Assembly: GCA_977020255.1 (NCBI GenBank)
Contig: CDROCS010004055.1
Coordinates: 124,001 to 188,000, forward strand
Direction: 5' to 3'
DNA: 64,000 bases
DNA from: Obrimoposthia wandeli
Lineage: Eukaryota
The position numbers were made by a program, and so were the translations under genes. Below, piece by piece: positions 6,846-13,525 of this stretch. Every line of letters starts with the position of its first letter. The stretch's first letter is position 1. A model generated the notes under the pieces. It was not told the DNA's origin. It saw only the letters and a list, made by a program, of their open reading frames with translations, and ran no database searches.

Positions 6846-7105
6846 TGTTCTGATGTAGTAAAAATAATTTTGTAAATTTGTAGTAAATTTGTAGTTGTAA
6901 TAAAACAATTTAAATAATTAAGTTAGATAATCTGTTGTCAACATAGTTTATACGTTTTGCAAATTGACAAAGTATAAAAAGTTGTATTTGTTTGAACGTA
7001 GGCAGCAGTGATTTTGAAGATAGGAAAGTTTGAATGTTTTTGAATAAAATAGTTGAGTTATATTGAATATGACTTTTGAAATGCGAAAATCCGGCCGCCA
7101 AAACA
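6846..7105 (+). repeat. 5' LTR (TG...CA)
   Basis: Direct repeat of 13268-13525. Confidence 0.9.
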
Positions 7106-7123
7106 TGGTAGCATAGCGTGGTT
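7106..7123 (+). promoter_or_regulatory. Primer-binding site (tRNA-Met-like)
   Basis: TGGTAGCATAGCGTGGTT directly after the LTR; resembles the complement of the tRNAiMet 3' end (TGGTAGCAGAG...). Confidence 0.75.
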
Positions 7124-7160
7124 GGGCTATGGACCCCCAGTTACAAAAAAATAAATTAAG

Positions 7161-7612
7161 AAGGATACCGAGGAAGCTGACGAGGATTCGCCAAAACAGC
7201 CTGCTCCGAAGGATCCTTTCAGTTTACTTCCAAAGATAACTTTTGATATGGATGAATGGAAAAGAACATACTCGAACAATGATATTGCTACAATTGCTAT
7301 GCCATATGTCTGGGATAAATTGGATAGATAAAACTATTATATTTAGGAGTATGAATATCTCTTCCCAGAAGAGCTTAGTAACTTGTTTATGACATGTAAT
7401 CTTATCGGTGGTATGTTCCAGCGCTTGGACAGTTTACGTAAACATGCATTCGCTTCGGTGGTTGTCATTGGTAAAGATAATGCTAATACAATTAAGGGTG
7501 TGTGGGTATGGAGAGGTCAGGATCTCGCTTTCATTTTATCAGAATATTGCCAAGTGGACTACGAGTATTACAAGTGGACTAAGCTTGACTCCAACTTAGA
7601 AGAGACCAAGAA
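7161..7612 (+). pseudogene. EEF1G: Captured intronless fragment of eEF1B-gamma C-terminal domain
   Basis: KDPFSLLPKITFDMDEWKRTYSN...[25 protein letters not shown]...[12 protein letters not shown]; internal stops. Confidence 0.92.
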
Positions 7613-7848
7613 AATAAAGGTAAAGAAGCACGCAACGACAACAGAAGCTGCGTAGAGAAGTAGAGAAGGCAAAACGTGCACTGAGTGGTTCACATAGCTT
7701 CAGAATAGAGATTGAGTCGTTCTATGATGGTGACGATTTTCCTGAGACGTTAACTAGAGCACGATTTGAAGAGCTGGATATGGATCTCTTCAAGAATACA
7801 CTGAAACCGGTTCATAAGGTTTTGGAGGATTCGGAATTAAAAAAGACC
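7613..7848 (+). pseudogene. HSPA5: Captured fragment of ER Hsp70 BiP/GRP78 ATPase domain
   Basis: [15 protein letters not shown]...[48 protein letters not shown] (frame of 7651). Confidence 0.9.
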
Positions 7849-8112
7849 TTCATTGTCCAAGGATTCGGAAAGGTGAGGCTGAATACAATGCGCTATTAAC
7901 ATCGATATGGAGTGCGCTGTATCGGGGTAATCGAGTTTGATTTGGCAATCTACATCAAGGGCGGTATCGATCCAAAAGAGCTGGAGGACTTTAAGATTGC
8001 GAATGGGACCATCAATGGATACCCAAAAGCGGAGAAGAGTGACTCAGAACTGTTATACAAAGAATGTGACATCTTGATATCGGCAGCCACGGAGCGACAG
8101 ATCACGAGCACT
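7843..8112 (+). pseudogene. GLUD1: Captured fragment of glutamate dehydrogenase (NAD-binding domain)
   Basis: [11 protein letters not shown]...MRY*HRYG...GIDPKELEDFK...CDILISAATERQIT. Confidence 0.9.
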
Positions 8113-8324
8113 AAAAGTTCCCTCTATGTTGGTGAGTTTGTAGGTTGCGTGAATTGTGTTGGCAACAGTTTAGCTTTGAAATCTTTGAAATATAATGTGG
8201 GTGGGGACAACCCCAGATTTAACCCCAACAGTTTAAAACCTTTAAGAGATAATGTGGGTGGGGACAACCCCAGATCTAAACCAACATTTTTAAAAATTAT
8301 GAATTTTACAATTTCGACTCTAGA

Positions 8325-8552
8325 TTTCAAATTTTCGCAAAAACTATTGTTGGAAAGACAATAAAATTAGAACTAGAATCAGGTGAAACTATTGAAGATG
8401 TAAAGGTAAAGATTCAAGAAAAGGAAGGCATTCCGCCAGACAAACAACGGTTAATATTTGCAGGTAAGTAGCTTGAGGGTGGGCGCAATCTAGCAGATTA
8501 TGAGATACAGAGAGAAAATACCCTTCAGTTAGTACTAAGACTTAGAGGTGGG
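8325..8552 (+). pseudogene. Ubiquitin moiety, in frame with downstream gag
   Basis: [74 protein letters not shown]; same frame as ATG 8712. Confidence 0.93.
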
Positions 8553-11500
8553 ACAGTGGAAGAAGAGAAGAAGGAATGAATGCGGATAAAGAAAACAATG
8601 AAGTGGAATTTAACCAGATTAAGGAACATGGTTATAGAAGGAATAGCGATGGGAAATGTAGCGAGTTAGCGATCGAGCTATGAAGAAGAATACGAAAAAT
8701 CGGTAAGAAAGATGATGGACATGGTGGAGTGGTGTTGTAAGAACGGGCAGGAGGAGAAATCAGCGAAAACTGAGAAAGAGATAGACGAGCTAGAAAAAAA
8801 TGATGAAGAAATCAGTCAACTACTGATCAAGAAAGTATCAGAGATGAACCCAGAGGTTGGTTGGGCTGGGGATAGAAGGGTAGGATCAAAAGAGAATATC
8901 AGACTTAGAAGATTAAAAAAGTTAACTGTCCAAAAATTCAGTGGGAATTTAAGAGAATATGCAGCGTGGAAAGCAGTATTTGAGGTATACGTACACAACG
9001 CAAGTGGAGAAGCAGGCGAGAAACTCTTATATCTCCGGGATTGATTGAGAGGTAAATCGTTGAAATTAGTGGAGAGTCTGCGTTTTTCAAACGAGGCCTG
9101 TGAAGTGGCAATCGAAAAATTGGAAAGAAGATATGGAGGACAAGAAAAAAGTTATAATTTAATTATAGAAGAGATCGAAAGATTTAAACCTCTTCGACAT
9201 GGAAAGGTAAGATATTGGGAACGATTTACCGATTTTCTGGAAACCGTAATAATTAAATTGATATCAATGGGTAAAGAAGGGGAGTTACGGGATGGCAAGC
9301 TGTTCCATAGAGCTCTTAAGTTATTGCTGGAGACAGAAATTATTAGCTGGGGAAGATATTGCAAGAAAATATGTACACCTTGGATAACTGAGCTAGGGAA
9401 GAGTCAGGGTATTTGCGAAAAGCTACTGACGTATCACGGGGAGTGGACAGAAGCGGAATGGAGCGAAAGAGAGCTACTTTCCACACACAGACGATGCAAG
9501 AAAGAAGAGGGGATCAATTTTAGATATCACGAAATAACGGAGTCAATAGGGCAGAACTTCCAAATTATGGGCGAGAACCGAGAAACGAGGAAAGGAGAGC
9601 TCAAAATCAGAGAACAATGTGGAAGAAGAGTTTCTGCAAATGCGGAGAAAATCATTATTTAAGCCAATGTGAGAAGTTCAAGAGCTTGCATTTGGACGAG
9701 AGGTGGGAGTTTGTAAGAAAGAATGTGCTCTGTTTTAATTGTCTTAATGAAGGCCATTGGCGAATGAATGCAAGTTAAGGAAGTTCTGTAATGTGACTGG
9801 ATGTCCAACAAAGCACCACTTCTTGGTGCATCGAAAATGTAAGGGGAGCACTATGTCATCGGTGAAATTCACAAACCACATTAAGATAGGTGGTAAGAAC
9901 AAAGTAATTACATTGAGGACCGTGCCAGTCGTCCTCAGAAATGAGAAAAGAACAGTGCAGGTAAATGCGCTATTAGATGATGGTAGCACCACCAGCTACG
10001 TCAACAGTTAAGTGGCGAAGACATTGAAGGCAGAAGGTACAAGGCAGACAGTACCAGTCAGTGTTATCGGAGGTAGATTACACGAAATAGCCACAACCTC
10101 GGTGACATTAACAGTGAAAGGGGTAGATAGTTGAGAAAGAATGCAACTAGATGCACTCACAGTAAATAACGTGACCGGCTACTTGAAAGTTTATGAGTGA
10201 GGAGATGTGGTACAAAGGTGGACACATCTCAGGAAGATAAAATGACCTCAGGGAGATAGAAGAATGCGGAAGGTGTATGTACTTATAGAAACCGATTGTA
10301 TGCGGGCACATCGAGTATTGAGAAAGATTGCTGGGCGAGAGGAAAGCCAGTGACAGGATTGACTCCACTCAGGTGGACATGTGTAGGGAAGGTCAATGTA
10401 GACCAGCGGCAACAGGTTAATTTCATAAGGACGTATTTTACAGGTAATGAGCAACTAGATCAGACACTTCAATGTTTTGGGAAAGTAGAGGAAGAACTGA
10501 TGAAATCTAAGATATCGACTGAAGACAATAAATTATTGCAGATGACAAAAGAAAATATGAGGTACGATGGCGAGAGGTATCAGGTAAAATTACCTTGGAA
10601 GATAGAAAAAGAGAAATTACAGAAGAGTCAGGAAATGGCGAAAAGAAGATTGGATAATTTGACACAACGTTTTAAACGGAATAATCAGCTAGAAGAAGCA
10701 TACACCCGAGTAATAAAAGACAACTTACAGAAGGGTATATTAGAGTAGTAGAAGAAAAAAATGAAGTGGGAACTAAGAGGTTGTTATCGCACTTCCCAGT
10801 AGTACGTAATGATAAAATTACCTCAAAAGTGAGAATTGTATTTGACACAGCAGCAAAAGTGAACGGAATCAGTTTGAATGAAGCTTTAGTATGTGGCCTA
10901 AAATTCCAGGGTGACTTGATAACAATACTAACAAGATTCCGACGGCACCCAGTAGCATTGATATGCGACATTCAGAGAATGAACCTACAGATACAGGTTG
11001 CAAAAGAAGATCAACCGTATCTTAGATTTTTATGGTGGATATATGGTAAGGTGCGGCAACTAGAGTTCAACTGATTGGTATTTGGTTTAAATACATATCC
11101 GTTTCTGGCATAGTTGATCACACAAGAGAATGCTAGAAGCTACCTAGGGAAGTATCCGAGAGCTGTTGAAACAATATTATATTCTACTTATATGGATGAT
11201 AGTATTGATTCAGTCACCACACTCGAACAAGGTTTAAAATTGAAGTATGAGTTAAAAGAAGTGTGGACTGCAGCAGGGATGAAAGCACGAAAGTGGTTAA
11301 GCAACAGCGAAGAATTGATGAAGACTGTACCTGAAGATGAGCGAGCTACCAAATGGAAGACAGAAGAAGAAGAAGAAGAAGAAGAAGAAGAAGAAGAAGA
11401 AGAAGAAGAAGAAGAAGAAAATGAAGTAACAACGAAGACATAATGAGTGAAATGGGATCCACGAGATGATCTGTTTAAATTTAATATCACCGAGATAAAT

Positions 11501-13195
11501 TTAGAGCGAATAACGAAAAGAACATTTCTCAGTCTCATAGCACGAATATATGACCCGTTAGGAATGGTGAGTGCATTTACTATAAAGGGAAAGATGATTA
11601 TGTAAGATATATGGTTAAGTGCTGCAGATTGAGACGATGAATTGGATGAAAAATTAACAACTACCATAAGGAAATGGAGCGACGATTGTTTATACTTAGA
11701 CAGAATACGAATGAATCGATGTTTAAAAATATTCGAGAAATCAGTGATAGATTACCACATTTTTGTAGATGCGTCAATGAAAGCTTATGGAGCAGTGATG
11801 TATGCTTGTAAACTGGTAGAGGAAGTGCGCAGTACATTAGTAATAGCGTAAGCAAAGATTGTCCCAATATCTACAATATGTCTACCAAGGTTAGAGTTAA
11901 TGGCAGCTTGTGTAGGATTAACCATTGGAAGAAAAGTGGCGGAAGCGTTAGAAATCGAAATGAAACAAATAACATTCTGGAGTGATAGCATGACCACGTT
12001 GAGCTGGATAAAACAACACACTCGTTTGTTCAAAACATTTGTAGTAAATAGAGTATCAAATATTCAGAGGCAAACAAAACCTAATCAATGGCGGTATGTT
12101 TTTACCAAAGAAAATCCAGCAGATTTTCTATCCCGAGGCATAAATTTAGAAGAATTGGTAAAGTCGAGAATGTGGTGGGAAGGTCCAGAATTTTTAAAGC
12201 AGGAGCAAAATGACCAAAATAAGAAAATAAATGCGCAAGAATCAAAAACTGAACGACAGAAGGAGCCTTGTGTTTTAACAAAACCACAAAAGTCAGAACC
12301 TATGTGGGACAAACAGACGTATTTAGGACAGAGACTTTTTCAGATTGGAGAAGACTGATTACAGTACGAACTTGGATAAATAGATTCGTAAAAAACTGTC
12401 GAGTTCCAAAATTAGAACGACAGGTGGAAACATTATCGATAGAGGAATTAGAAGATGCAAGATGTACTTTAATAAGAGAAGATCAAAAATTAAATTATCC
12501 ATATGAATTAAAAGCATTGGATGAAGGAAAATCGATTCCACAGAAGAGTATAATTTCCAGCCTAAATTCAATATTAGATGAATTAGTGATAAGAAGTAAT
12601 AGCCGAGTTATTACCATCAAGCACGAGATTTCCTATCATTTTAGCACAACATAGTTGGGTCACGTGGCTGATAATAAGAGATTATCATAAGAAACGAAAA
12701 CATATAGCTGGTGTAAATAATTTATTTAGTGAACTAATCAGAAAATTTTGGGTAGAAAAAGCAAGAGTGGTCGTACAAGAGTATCAAAGAAAATATTTAG
12801 AGTGTAAACGTCGTGCGAGAAAAGGAGTTATAGTGAAAATAGCCCCCTTACCACGAATGACATTTCTAAGTCCATTACGAGCTTTTGATAAAGTGGGGGT
12901 TGACTTCGTATCTAACAATGCAAGGCCGTGGCAAAATTCGACAGAAACGGTACCTTTGTTTGTTCCCGTACCTACAAACTCGATCAGTGCACCTCAAATT
13001 AGCATGGGGTTTGGATACAGATGCGTTTCTACGAGCATTCAAAAGAATAAAGAGTTTAAGACGAGACAAAGCAGGAGAGACACGAAGCTGTATAGTAGTG
13101 TTAGGTGGAAAGGAATTTGTACGGCCGGTAGCGAGGTTGTATCCACTAGAGGTAGAAGGAAGAGAAGAATGAAGATGCAGGAAACAAAGGTTTAA
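8553..13195 (+). pseudogene. BEL/Pao gag-pol, many stops and frameshifts
   Basis: Gag KFSGNLREYAAW; Zn knuckles; protease ALLDDGS; RT YMDD (~11190); RNase H FVDASMKAYGAV; integrase C-terminus RPVARLYPLE. Confidence 0.92.
11363..11419 (+). repeat. (GAA)19 microsatellite (poly-Glu) in RT/RNase H linker
   Basis: Direct count. Confidence 0.95.
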
Positions 13196-13267: not shown

Positions 13268-13525
13268 TGTTCTGACGTAGTAAAAATAATTTTGTAAATT
13301 TGTAGTAAATTTGTTGTTGTAATAAAATAATTTAAATAAGTAAGTTAGATAATCTGTTGTCAACATAGTTTATGCGTTTTGCAAATTGACAAAGTATAAA
13401 AAGTTGTATTTGTTTGAATATTGCTACGTAGGCATCGGTGATTTTGAAGATAGGGGAGTTTCAATAAAATAGTTGGATTATGTTGAATATGACTTTTGAA
13501 ATGCGAAAATCCGGCCCACCAAATA
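13268..13525 (+). repeat. 3' LTR, preceded by polypurine tract AAGGCGAGGGG
   Basis: Direct repeat of the 5' LTR with several substitutions and indels. Confidence 0.88.

Follow-up and report, generated by a model that had tools for sequence, protein, structure and literature searches.

The 64,000-nucleotide stretch of contig CDROCS010004055.1 of Obrimoposthia wandeli (assembly GCA_977020255.1), here called the window and within which all positions are counted, comes from an AT-rich animal genome of 1.35 Gb and contains one copy of a 6.7-kb BEL/Pao long terminal repeat (LTR) retrotransposon, in which a ubiquitin (Ub) unit shares one reading frame with the Gag protein that follows it. The copy is decayed and dead, with a frameshifted leader and pol region and a truncated integrase. 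Between the putative primer binding site (PBS) and the Ub unit lies a leader of ~1.2 kb (~400 codons) that carries fragments of host genes. The features of the copy are the following:

6846 to 7105, + strand: 5′ LTR, ~260 bp, TG...CA, a direct repeat with 13268-13525
7069 to 7071, + strand: ATG in U5 that is a candidate start codon and lies 37 nt ahead of the PBS
7106 to 7127, + strand: putative PBS, TGGTAGCA..., adjoining the LTR end, with TGG at its start
7155 to 7612, + strand: fragment of the host EF1-gamma C-terminal domain, sense and in its native frame (Pfam EF1G, 1e-10 and 3e-22)
7605 to 7847, + strand: fragment of host BiP/GRP78 (Hsp70), sense (Pfam HSP70, 9.5e-17)
7848 to 8110, + strand: glutamate dehydrogenase (GDH) fragment, sense (Pfam ELFV_dehydrog, 1.5e-6)
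8111 to 8324, + strand: leader linker, ~210 nt, with a 57-nt tandem duplication at 8175-8288 (repeat family D3)
8325 to 8552, + strand: ubiquitin module, 76 codons ending in LRLRGG, with a stop at 8469
8553 to 8669, + strand: start of Gag, with a small residue, an acidic run and a basic K..K..LTR.RN motif, and stops at 8577 and 8667
8670 to 9659, + strand: Gag, long helices and then the DUF1759 core (Pfam DUF1759), with a stop at 9042
9524 to 10131, + strand: zinc knuckles and aspartic protease in frameshifted pieces, with CX2CX4HX4C-like motifs and LLDDGST read in the translations
10685 to 12355, + strand: reverse transcriptase (YMDD) and RNase H region, in pieces, the YMDD lying within 11114-11440
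12253 to 13192, + strand: N-terminal part of the integrase, its core and C-terminus missing by comparison with sibling copy L054, which runs on through the integrase core
13268 to 13525, + strand: 3′ LTR, a direct repeat with 6846-7105

Translation of positions 8100-9800 places the ubiquitin module in the same frame as gag, recognised here by its DUF1759 domain. The first codon of the module encodes F instead of M, and downstream of its LRLRGG tail the frame reads TVEEEKKE, followed by helical gag sequence and then by the DUF1759 core. Four point stops interrupt this shared frame, at 8469 (TAG), 8577 (TGA), 8667 (TAG) and 9042 (TGA), with 29 codons between the second and the third. The Pfam ubiquitin profile (PF00240) scores 50.2 bits on the stop-free N part of the module and 79.1 bits when read across the stop (C4055:132331-132546). 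When the region 8325-9044 is compared with three siblings, that is, other copies of the element in the same genome (L006, L014 and L029), alignments of 718 nt without gaps are obtained, which means that the window copy departs from them by substitutions only. Moreover, those siblings that are still in frame carry sense codons at all four stop positions, so the four stops are private to the window. A preliminary description of this DNA had already reported that the Ub codons are in frame with gag, with an intact LRLRGG followed by TVEEEKKE, and that only point stops occur in 8325-9044; the first statement was confirmed by translation and Pfam, and the second by the gap-free alignments.

Comparison of the siblings, made copy by copy, extended this arrangement to the rest of the family. 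A search of the host genome found Ub together with gag in at least 40 scored copies (324 candidates) at 85-93% identity, and the C-terminus of Ub and gag are in one frame in ~16 of 30 copies. The junction is crossed without a stop by open stretches of 306 aa in L033 (22 leader residues, the whole Ub and 208 Gag residues), 254 aa in L014, 182 aa in both L010 and L043, and 175 aa in L051. At loci C2349 and C332, Ub and DUF1759 occur together in one unbroken frame each, of 628 and 614 aa. Many further pairs of PF00240 and PF03564 matches at a constant spacing of ~400 nt appeared when the coordinate tables of two genome searches were crossed. The family-wide stop or frameshift between Ub and gag that, according to the preliminary description, would refute the fusion was thus not found, given the open siblings and the frames at C2349 and C332. 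The Ub-Gag fusion is an inherited feature of the family, and not an accident of the window copy.

The same joint is present outside this genome. A query made of gag only, the 208 aa of the open L033 stretch, retrieved 568 relatives from 1.84 billion representative proteins; the matches of the whole 306-aa leader-Ub-gag query were swamped by polyubiquitins of 400-535 aa, and were uninformative on Ub-Gag relatives. Six closest relatives, taken from the best 150 of the 568, align also over the N-terminal part of Gag, at 28-40% identity, and come from ENA and JGI metagenome assemblies plus one UniParc entry. All six have a Ub domain directly upstream of gag, and none was found in the remaining 144 of the best-scoring 150 (of 568), most of which align to the DUF1759 core alone. 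In ten sequences of the family and its relatives, G76 is invariant and G75 is at least 90% conserved, and the residue after the two glycines is T (as in the window), S, G, M or N, never Pro. About 15 residues past the GG, the basic K..K..LTR.RN motif is common to the siblings and the six public relatives, and this common alignment of the junction indicates that the joint is homologous and the fusion old. A natural Ub-Gag retrotransposon was not found described in the full-text literature, the coverage of which is incomplete and leaves novelty unproven. The word ubiquitin does not occur in the text of the BEL/Pao survey (PMC3118150).

The age of the module can be judged against the canonical polyubiquitin genes and Ub fusion genes that the host possesses (L061-L072); UBA52 and RPS27A of the host lie at C765:282347 and C194:1360514. 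Nucleotide identity between the module and host polyubiquitin is 68-73% (68% to host ubiquitin for the window copy), with synonymous divergence saturated (dS >2 or undefined) and nonsynonymous divergence (dN) of 0.15-0.22. At the protein level, the module and host ubiquitin align without gaps and agree at 57 of 82 positions (Ub and six flanking residues), and all 76 residues and the tail are in place. Eukaryotic ubiquitin is near-invariant, and the module falls outside that identity, since Met1 is absent and Leu8 has become Ile, Lys63 Arg and His68 Gln; judged by its residues, the module is a diverged ubiquitin-derived unit, not ubiquitin proper. Thirteen mostly conservative substitutions are common to the window, L006 and L008, and must therefore predate the burst of the family. 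The neighbouring leader pieces tell a different story: the EF1-gamma fragment is 93.0% identical in nucleotide sequence to host gene L049 and the BiP fragment (7641-7847) 96.1% identical to host gene L060, which indicates recent captures, whereas the low identity of Ub together with its saturated synonymous sites points to an old unit kept under constraint. The notion of ubiquitin as a recent capture is consequently not sustained. Between two subfamilies, the proportions of synonymous (pS) and nonsynonymous (pN) differences are 0.41 and 0.165 for Ub (ratio 0.40), and 0.14 and 0.076 for the adjacent gag. Ub is thus far more divergent than gag. These values show constraint on Ub in the active lineages, and also that the leader/Ub part was probably swapped between subfamilies by recombination.

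A structural view of the junction was obtained with an AlphaFold model of the naturally open L033 stretch (alignment of 10 rows, mean pLDDT 71). In the model, the tail of the leader is disordered, residues 22-95 form a beta-grasp and RLKGG ends the module; a helix begins two residues after the GG, and three long helices are followed by a helical DUF1759 domain. In a Foldseek comparison with the PDB, the top 50 matches to the L033 model were essentially all ubiquitin chains, with TM (target) values ≤0.92 and an rmsd of 1.4-2 Å. The gag-like coiled coil that had been noticed after LRLRGG in the preliminary description corresponds to the three long helices of the model.

Upstream of the module, the leader is a patchwork. 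Its first piece, a nearly complete C-terminal domain, derives from the host EF1-gamma gene L049 (contig C4623), which has at least two exons, and the second from the host BiP gene L060 (contig C3923), a single open frame of 633 codons with a signal peptide and a ...SRDEL end. A/G-rich microhomology marks the junctions between fragments, which is the pattern that template switching by reverse transcriptase should leave. Siblings L054 and L016 have a GDH fragment that is longer than that of the window copy; the former (C2224:158588-161998) is a deletion derivative in which the longer GDH and the linker are joined to the RNase H/integrase end, without Ub or gag. Within the linker, the duplication consists of two 57-nt units of 79% identity, each coding for ...YNVGGDNPR..., and siblings have one or two of them. 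The linker (8111-8324) was also considered as a decayed Ub-like module on account of its YNVGG motif and discarded, being too short (~40 residues) and with no Pfam hit. Likewise, the residues LRNE ahead of Ub in one leader variant resemble the LRGG tail of a preceding Ub too weakly to be taken as its relic.

All these pieces keep a common phase. EF1G, Hsp70, GDH, linker, Ub and gag stand in one frame in L005, L010, L011, L015, L029, L058 and others, the linker of the siblings being in frame with both GDH and Ub, and the siblings have open frames of 128-232 aa upstream of Ub. The frame changes of the window leader are private to it: 10 nt are deleted near 7645, and a change of 1 nt occurs near 8283-8290. 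Three unrelated fragments each keep their native frame and match the phase of gag, for which phase alone would give a frequency of only ~1/27. A filter in which stop-free, in-phase insertions alone permit Gag-Pol would account for this, and it requires translation to begin upstream of the fragments; the in-frame leader is thus best read as translated, with such a filter as the simplest reading of the common phase. The content of the leader is far less stable than its frame. Siblings carry differing subsets of the pieces as well as extra ones, which marks the leader as the fluid part of the element, and in the relative P0122 the piece that precedes Ub in frame is an Hsp90 fragment. Extra in-frame pieces with no Pfam match in L025 (798-1150) and in L028 (2642-3169, minus strand) are possibly fragments of other host genes; a likeness of the L028 piece to SCYL1 was not confirmed by Pfam and was dropped.

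Taken as a whole, we read the locus as an old and maintained Ub unit after whose Gly-Gly host deubiquitinases cut, releasing Gag behind a translated and changeable leader, and we give this reading a probability of roughly 0.6. The ancestral 5′ region would have been one open reading frame (ORF) comprising a short LTR/PBS-derived peptide, the host mRNA fragments (EF1-gamma, BiP, GDH), Ub and Gag-Pol, and its leader would have been translated from a U5 start codon. Host deubiquitinases would cut after Gly-Gly, as they do in polyubiquitin, in the Ub-ribosomal fusion genes and in Ub-carrying pestiviruses, and the cut would free Gag with a fixed N-terminus, a small residue followed by an acidic run, whatever stands upstream. 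The leader would gain its in-frame host fragments through template switching during reverse transcription, and these would be tolerated because the leader is cut away. We infer the cleavage from where the module stands, from the conservation of its tail and from the established behaviour of linear ubiquitin fusions. In the preliminary description, the element had been proposed to co-opt host deubiquitinases for a defined N-terminus of Gag. This proposal is supported in part, by a fusion that is family-wide and by a di-Gly joint that is kept in distant relatives as expected for a deubiquitinase site. The likely role of Ub is therefore the freeing of Gag from a variable leader.

Several points weigh against this reading, and one of them concerns the start of translation. 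In the window and the 30 siblings examined, codon 1 of Ub is never ATG but encodes F, L, I or Y, and the protein therefore does not begin with Ub. A Ub that simply heads the protein, or the boost in expression raised in the preliminary description, is not supported, given also the apparently translated ~400 codons ahead of it. In typical copies, the EF1G frame is closed by a TAG within the PBS, and the ATG at 7129, which directly follows the PBS, misses the phase of EF1G by one base (25 nt, not 24 or 27, with an A-run in between). The U5 ATG is in phase with EF1G in one complete copy only, L056, where the ORF that this ATG opens crosses the PBS and continues into the EF1-gamma fragment. In the window and in L035 the phase of the ATG holds from the PBS on, and in most other copies it is one base out, with differences in A/C runs. 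The PBS sequence TGGTAGCA... is itself kept in more than 20 siblings and in the metagenome relative L073, and the called ORF of this relative (L073/P0122) reads through its PBS, TGGTAGCAGAGC, in the same phase. The first ~270 nt of L073 (ENA ERZ27314303, contig k141_4160739) are GC-rich, unlike the AT-rich element that follows; the contig may be chimeric, and its called start, 27 nt upstream of the PBS, is to be treated with care. On the strength of these frames, the U5 start is the best candidate for opening the long frame. Among other solutions, neither a +1 frameshift on AAA-AGA nor a non-AUG start had support, and the phase of a spliced-leader AUG fits no copy.

The remaining points of this kind concern selection and the state of the copies. 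Within the main subfamily, the pN/pS of Ub is 0.84, a near-neutral decay as expected for dead copies, and the signal of constraint on Ub comes from between-lineage comparisons only. The window copy is itself non-functional. Nor does the loss of an intact Ub keep copies from spreading, through trans-mobilisation or segmental duplication, as illustrated by a defective subfamily of six copies (L005, L011, L013, L015, L018 and L024, on contigs C1558 (twice), C5309, C6309, C2648 and C4988) that share two identical in-frame stops and a 3-codon deletion within Ub. The pairwise pN and pS of these copies are only ~1-2%, and such near-identity in spite of the shared stops indicates that a defective element was amplified by one of the two routes; the two members on C1558 lie 22 kb apart in opposite orientation. 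Finally, both the cleavage by host deubiquitinases and the translation of the leader are deduced from sequence and by analogy.

An alternative that keeps the module functional supposes that Ub stays uncleaved, as an N-terminal ubiquitin-like domain of Gag that would recruit ESCRT, proteasome or trafficking factors, or would tune the stability of Gag. The module is conserved and correctly folded in the model, the helix that starts two residues past the GG could limit access of a protease, and ubiquitin fused to retroviral Gag can replace budding functions, all of which fits such a domain. Uncleaved ubiquitin-like domains, however, usually lose the tail, whereas here the full LRLRGG-type tail is retained, with G76 invariant, G75 nearly so and a non-Pro residue next; without a cut, moreover, Gag would carry a variable junk leader. 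We regard this alternative as unlikely.

A more speculative extension takes the Ub joint as a tolerant "cargo slot", in which host fragments (EF1-gamma, BiP, GDH and Hsp90 having been sampled) are translated and cut off, any stop-free piece that template switching brings in being accepted. Host proteins could then receive the freed leader-Ub, through its Gly-Gly end, as a ubiquitin tagged at the N-terminus, and the element would thereby be able to disturb host ubiquitylation or turn it to its own use. This idea we hold as rather improbable.

A still more doubtful explanation places the leader and Ub in an untranslated 5′ region, with Gag made from an internal ATG such as the one at 8712 and with the shared frame as a coincidence or a relic. 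It would suit the absence of any copy with an ATG at Ub codon 1 and the lack of a clean in-phase start in most copies, and the ORF 8712-9044 does begin with ATG. An untranslated region would nevertheless not be expected to hold three or four independent host fragments that are all sense, keep their native frame and match the phase of Ub and gag (the ~1/27 given above), nor open frames of up to 232 aa upstream of Ub. Both Ub and the 40 residues between the GG and position 8712 are conserved at the protein level, and gene calls in independent contigs span leader, Ub and gag.

The least probable reading, in which Ub is a passive passenger, one more fragment of an abundant host mRNA brought in by template switching and devoid of any role, draws on the row of captured host fragments in which Ub stands, on the abundance of ubiquitin mRNA and on the near-neutral pN/pS of the decayed copies of the subfamily, and is largely refuted by the contrast in age and by the external homologues, since Ub is exactly one full unit, 68-73% identical to the host with saturated synonymous sites, next to partial domains that are 93-96% identical, and since the same joint with its conserved di-Gly recurs in relatives with no more than 28-40% identity in gag.

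The assignment of the element to BEL/Pao rests on several of its parts. Its two LTRs align over 241 bases, with 13 mismatches and, in addition, two indels. The Pao signature Peptidase_A17 (PF05380) scores 30.7 bits on 11642-11848 against a cut-off of 22.3, and the translations give LLDDGST, YMDD and the integrase N-terminal pieces in sequence, that is, in the order protease, reverse transcriptase, RNase H and integrase (PR-RT-RH-IN). DUF1759 (PF03564) reaches 24.9 bits on 9045-9659, slightly below its cut-off of 25.4, which is exceeded at sibling places (60.2 bits on C2423 and 55.6 bits on C227) and in the relatives. A GAA-repeat expansion at ~11360-11425 produces a run of ~20 Glu in the reverse transcriptase/RNase H region, and a match to SRP9 in the piece 11114-11440 beside this run (E 0.004, below the cut-off) was taken as chance. 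Across the genome, the first-look candidates number 5275 for the ubiquitin domain versus 1405 for DUF1759 gag. Tandem open frames of ~89 aa with Ub-like units at a spacing of 270 nt, not canonical polyubiquitin, were also seen (C2592, C2050, C1456, C4682 and C1351). As a whole, the element shares with the BEL/Pao group (Belpaoviridae, PMC3118150) the layout LTR-PBS-gag(DUF1759)-PR-RT-RH-IN, in which its own PBS is putative, and the Pao peptidase_A17 signature, and differs from it in the Ub domain, present in only the six closest among the best 150 of the 568 DUF1759-type gag relatives.

Should the cut prove real, a host Ub unit would have become a permanent part of the polyprotein in a whole clade of animal retrotransposons, in which host deubiquitinases, and not the protease of the element, set the N-terminus of Gag. 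So far, such a use of Ub has mainly been known from sporadic recombinants among the pestiviruses. A real cut would also account for host fragments that are carried in frame and exchanged without harm to Gag, and would offer a natural system for studying the capture of gene fragments through template switching. For annotation, thousands of ubiquitin-like matches in this genome, as counted among the first-look candidates, may be element-borne and not host genes.

Among known systems, the nearest functional parallel is the Ub insert of cytopathogenic pestiviruses, the cellular one is found in the polyubiquitin and Ub-ribosomal genes, and the leader finds its counterpart in retroviral transduction. 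In pestiviruses such as cytopathogenic bovine viral diarrhoea virus (BVDV), a host Ub is likewise inserted in frame into the polyprotein, with an intact Gly-Gly at the N-terminus of the downstream protein; this insert is cut by host ubiquitin hydrolases and was gained by RNA recombination. The pestivirus insert is recent, strain-specific, near-identical to host ubiquitin, tied to pathogenicity and placed before the protease/helicase, whereas the Ub of the retrotransposon is old, diverged (~70-75% aa identity), fixed in a whole clade and placed before Gag. Polyubiquitin, UBA52 and RPS27A show the same head-to-tail joining of one Ub unit to a downstream protein, with the RGG end and a non-Pro residue next, although in these genes Ub is N-terminal and keeps its Met, and in the element it is internal, lacks Met1 and has a leader of ~400 codons ahead. 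As in the gag-onc fusions of retroviruses and the exons captured by plant LTR elements, the host pieces of the leader are sense, intron-less mRNA fragments joined at microhomologies; what sets them apart is that a single frame ahead of a Ub joint strings together several unrelated housekeeping or chaperone fragments, and that these vary among siblings and distant relatives (EF1-gamma, BiP and GDH here, Hsp90 in P0122). Lastly, the 2A "self-cleaving" peptides found at the ORF N-terminus of some non-LTR retrotransposons are also short modules that part a leader from the protein of the element during or just after translation, but they do so by ribosomal skipping in place of a host protease, in another class of element and with a module of another origin.

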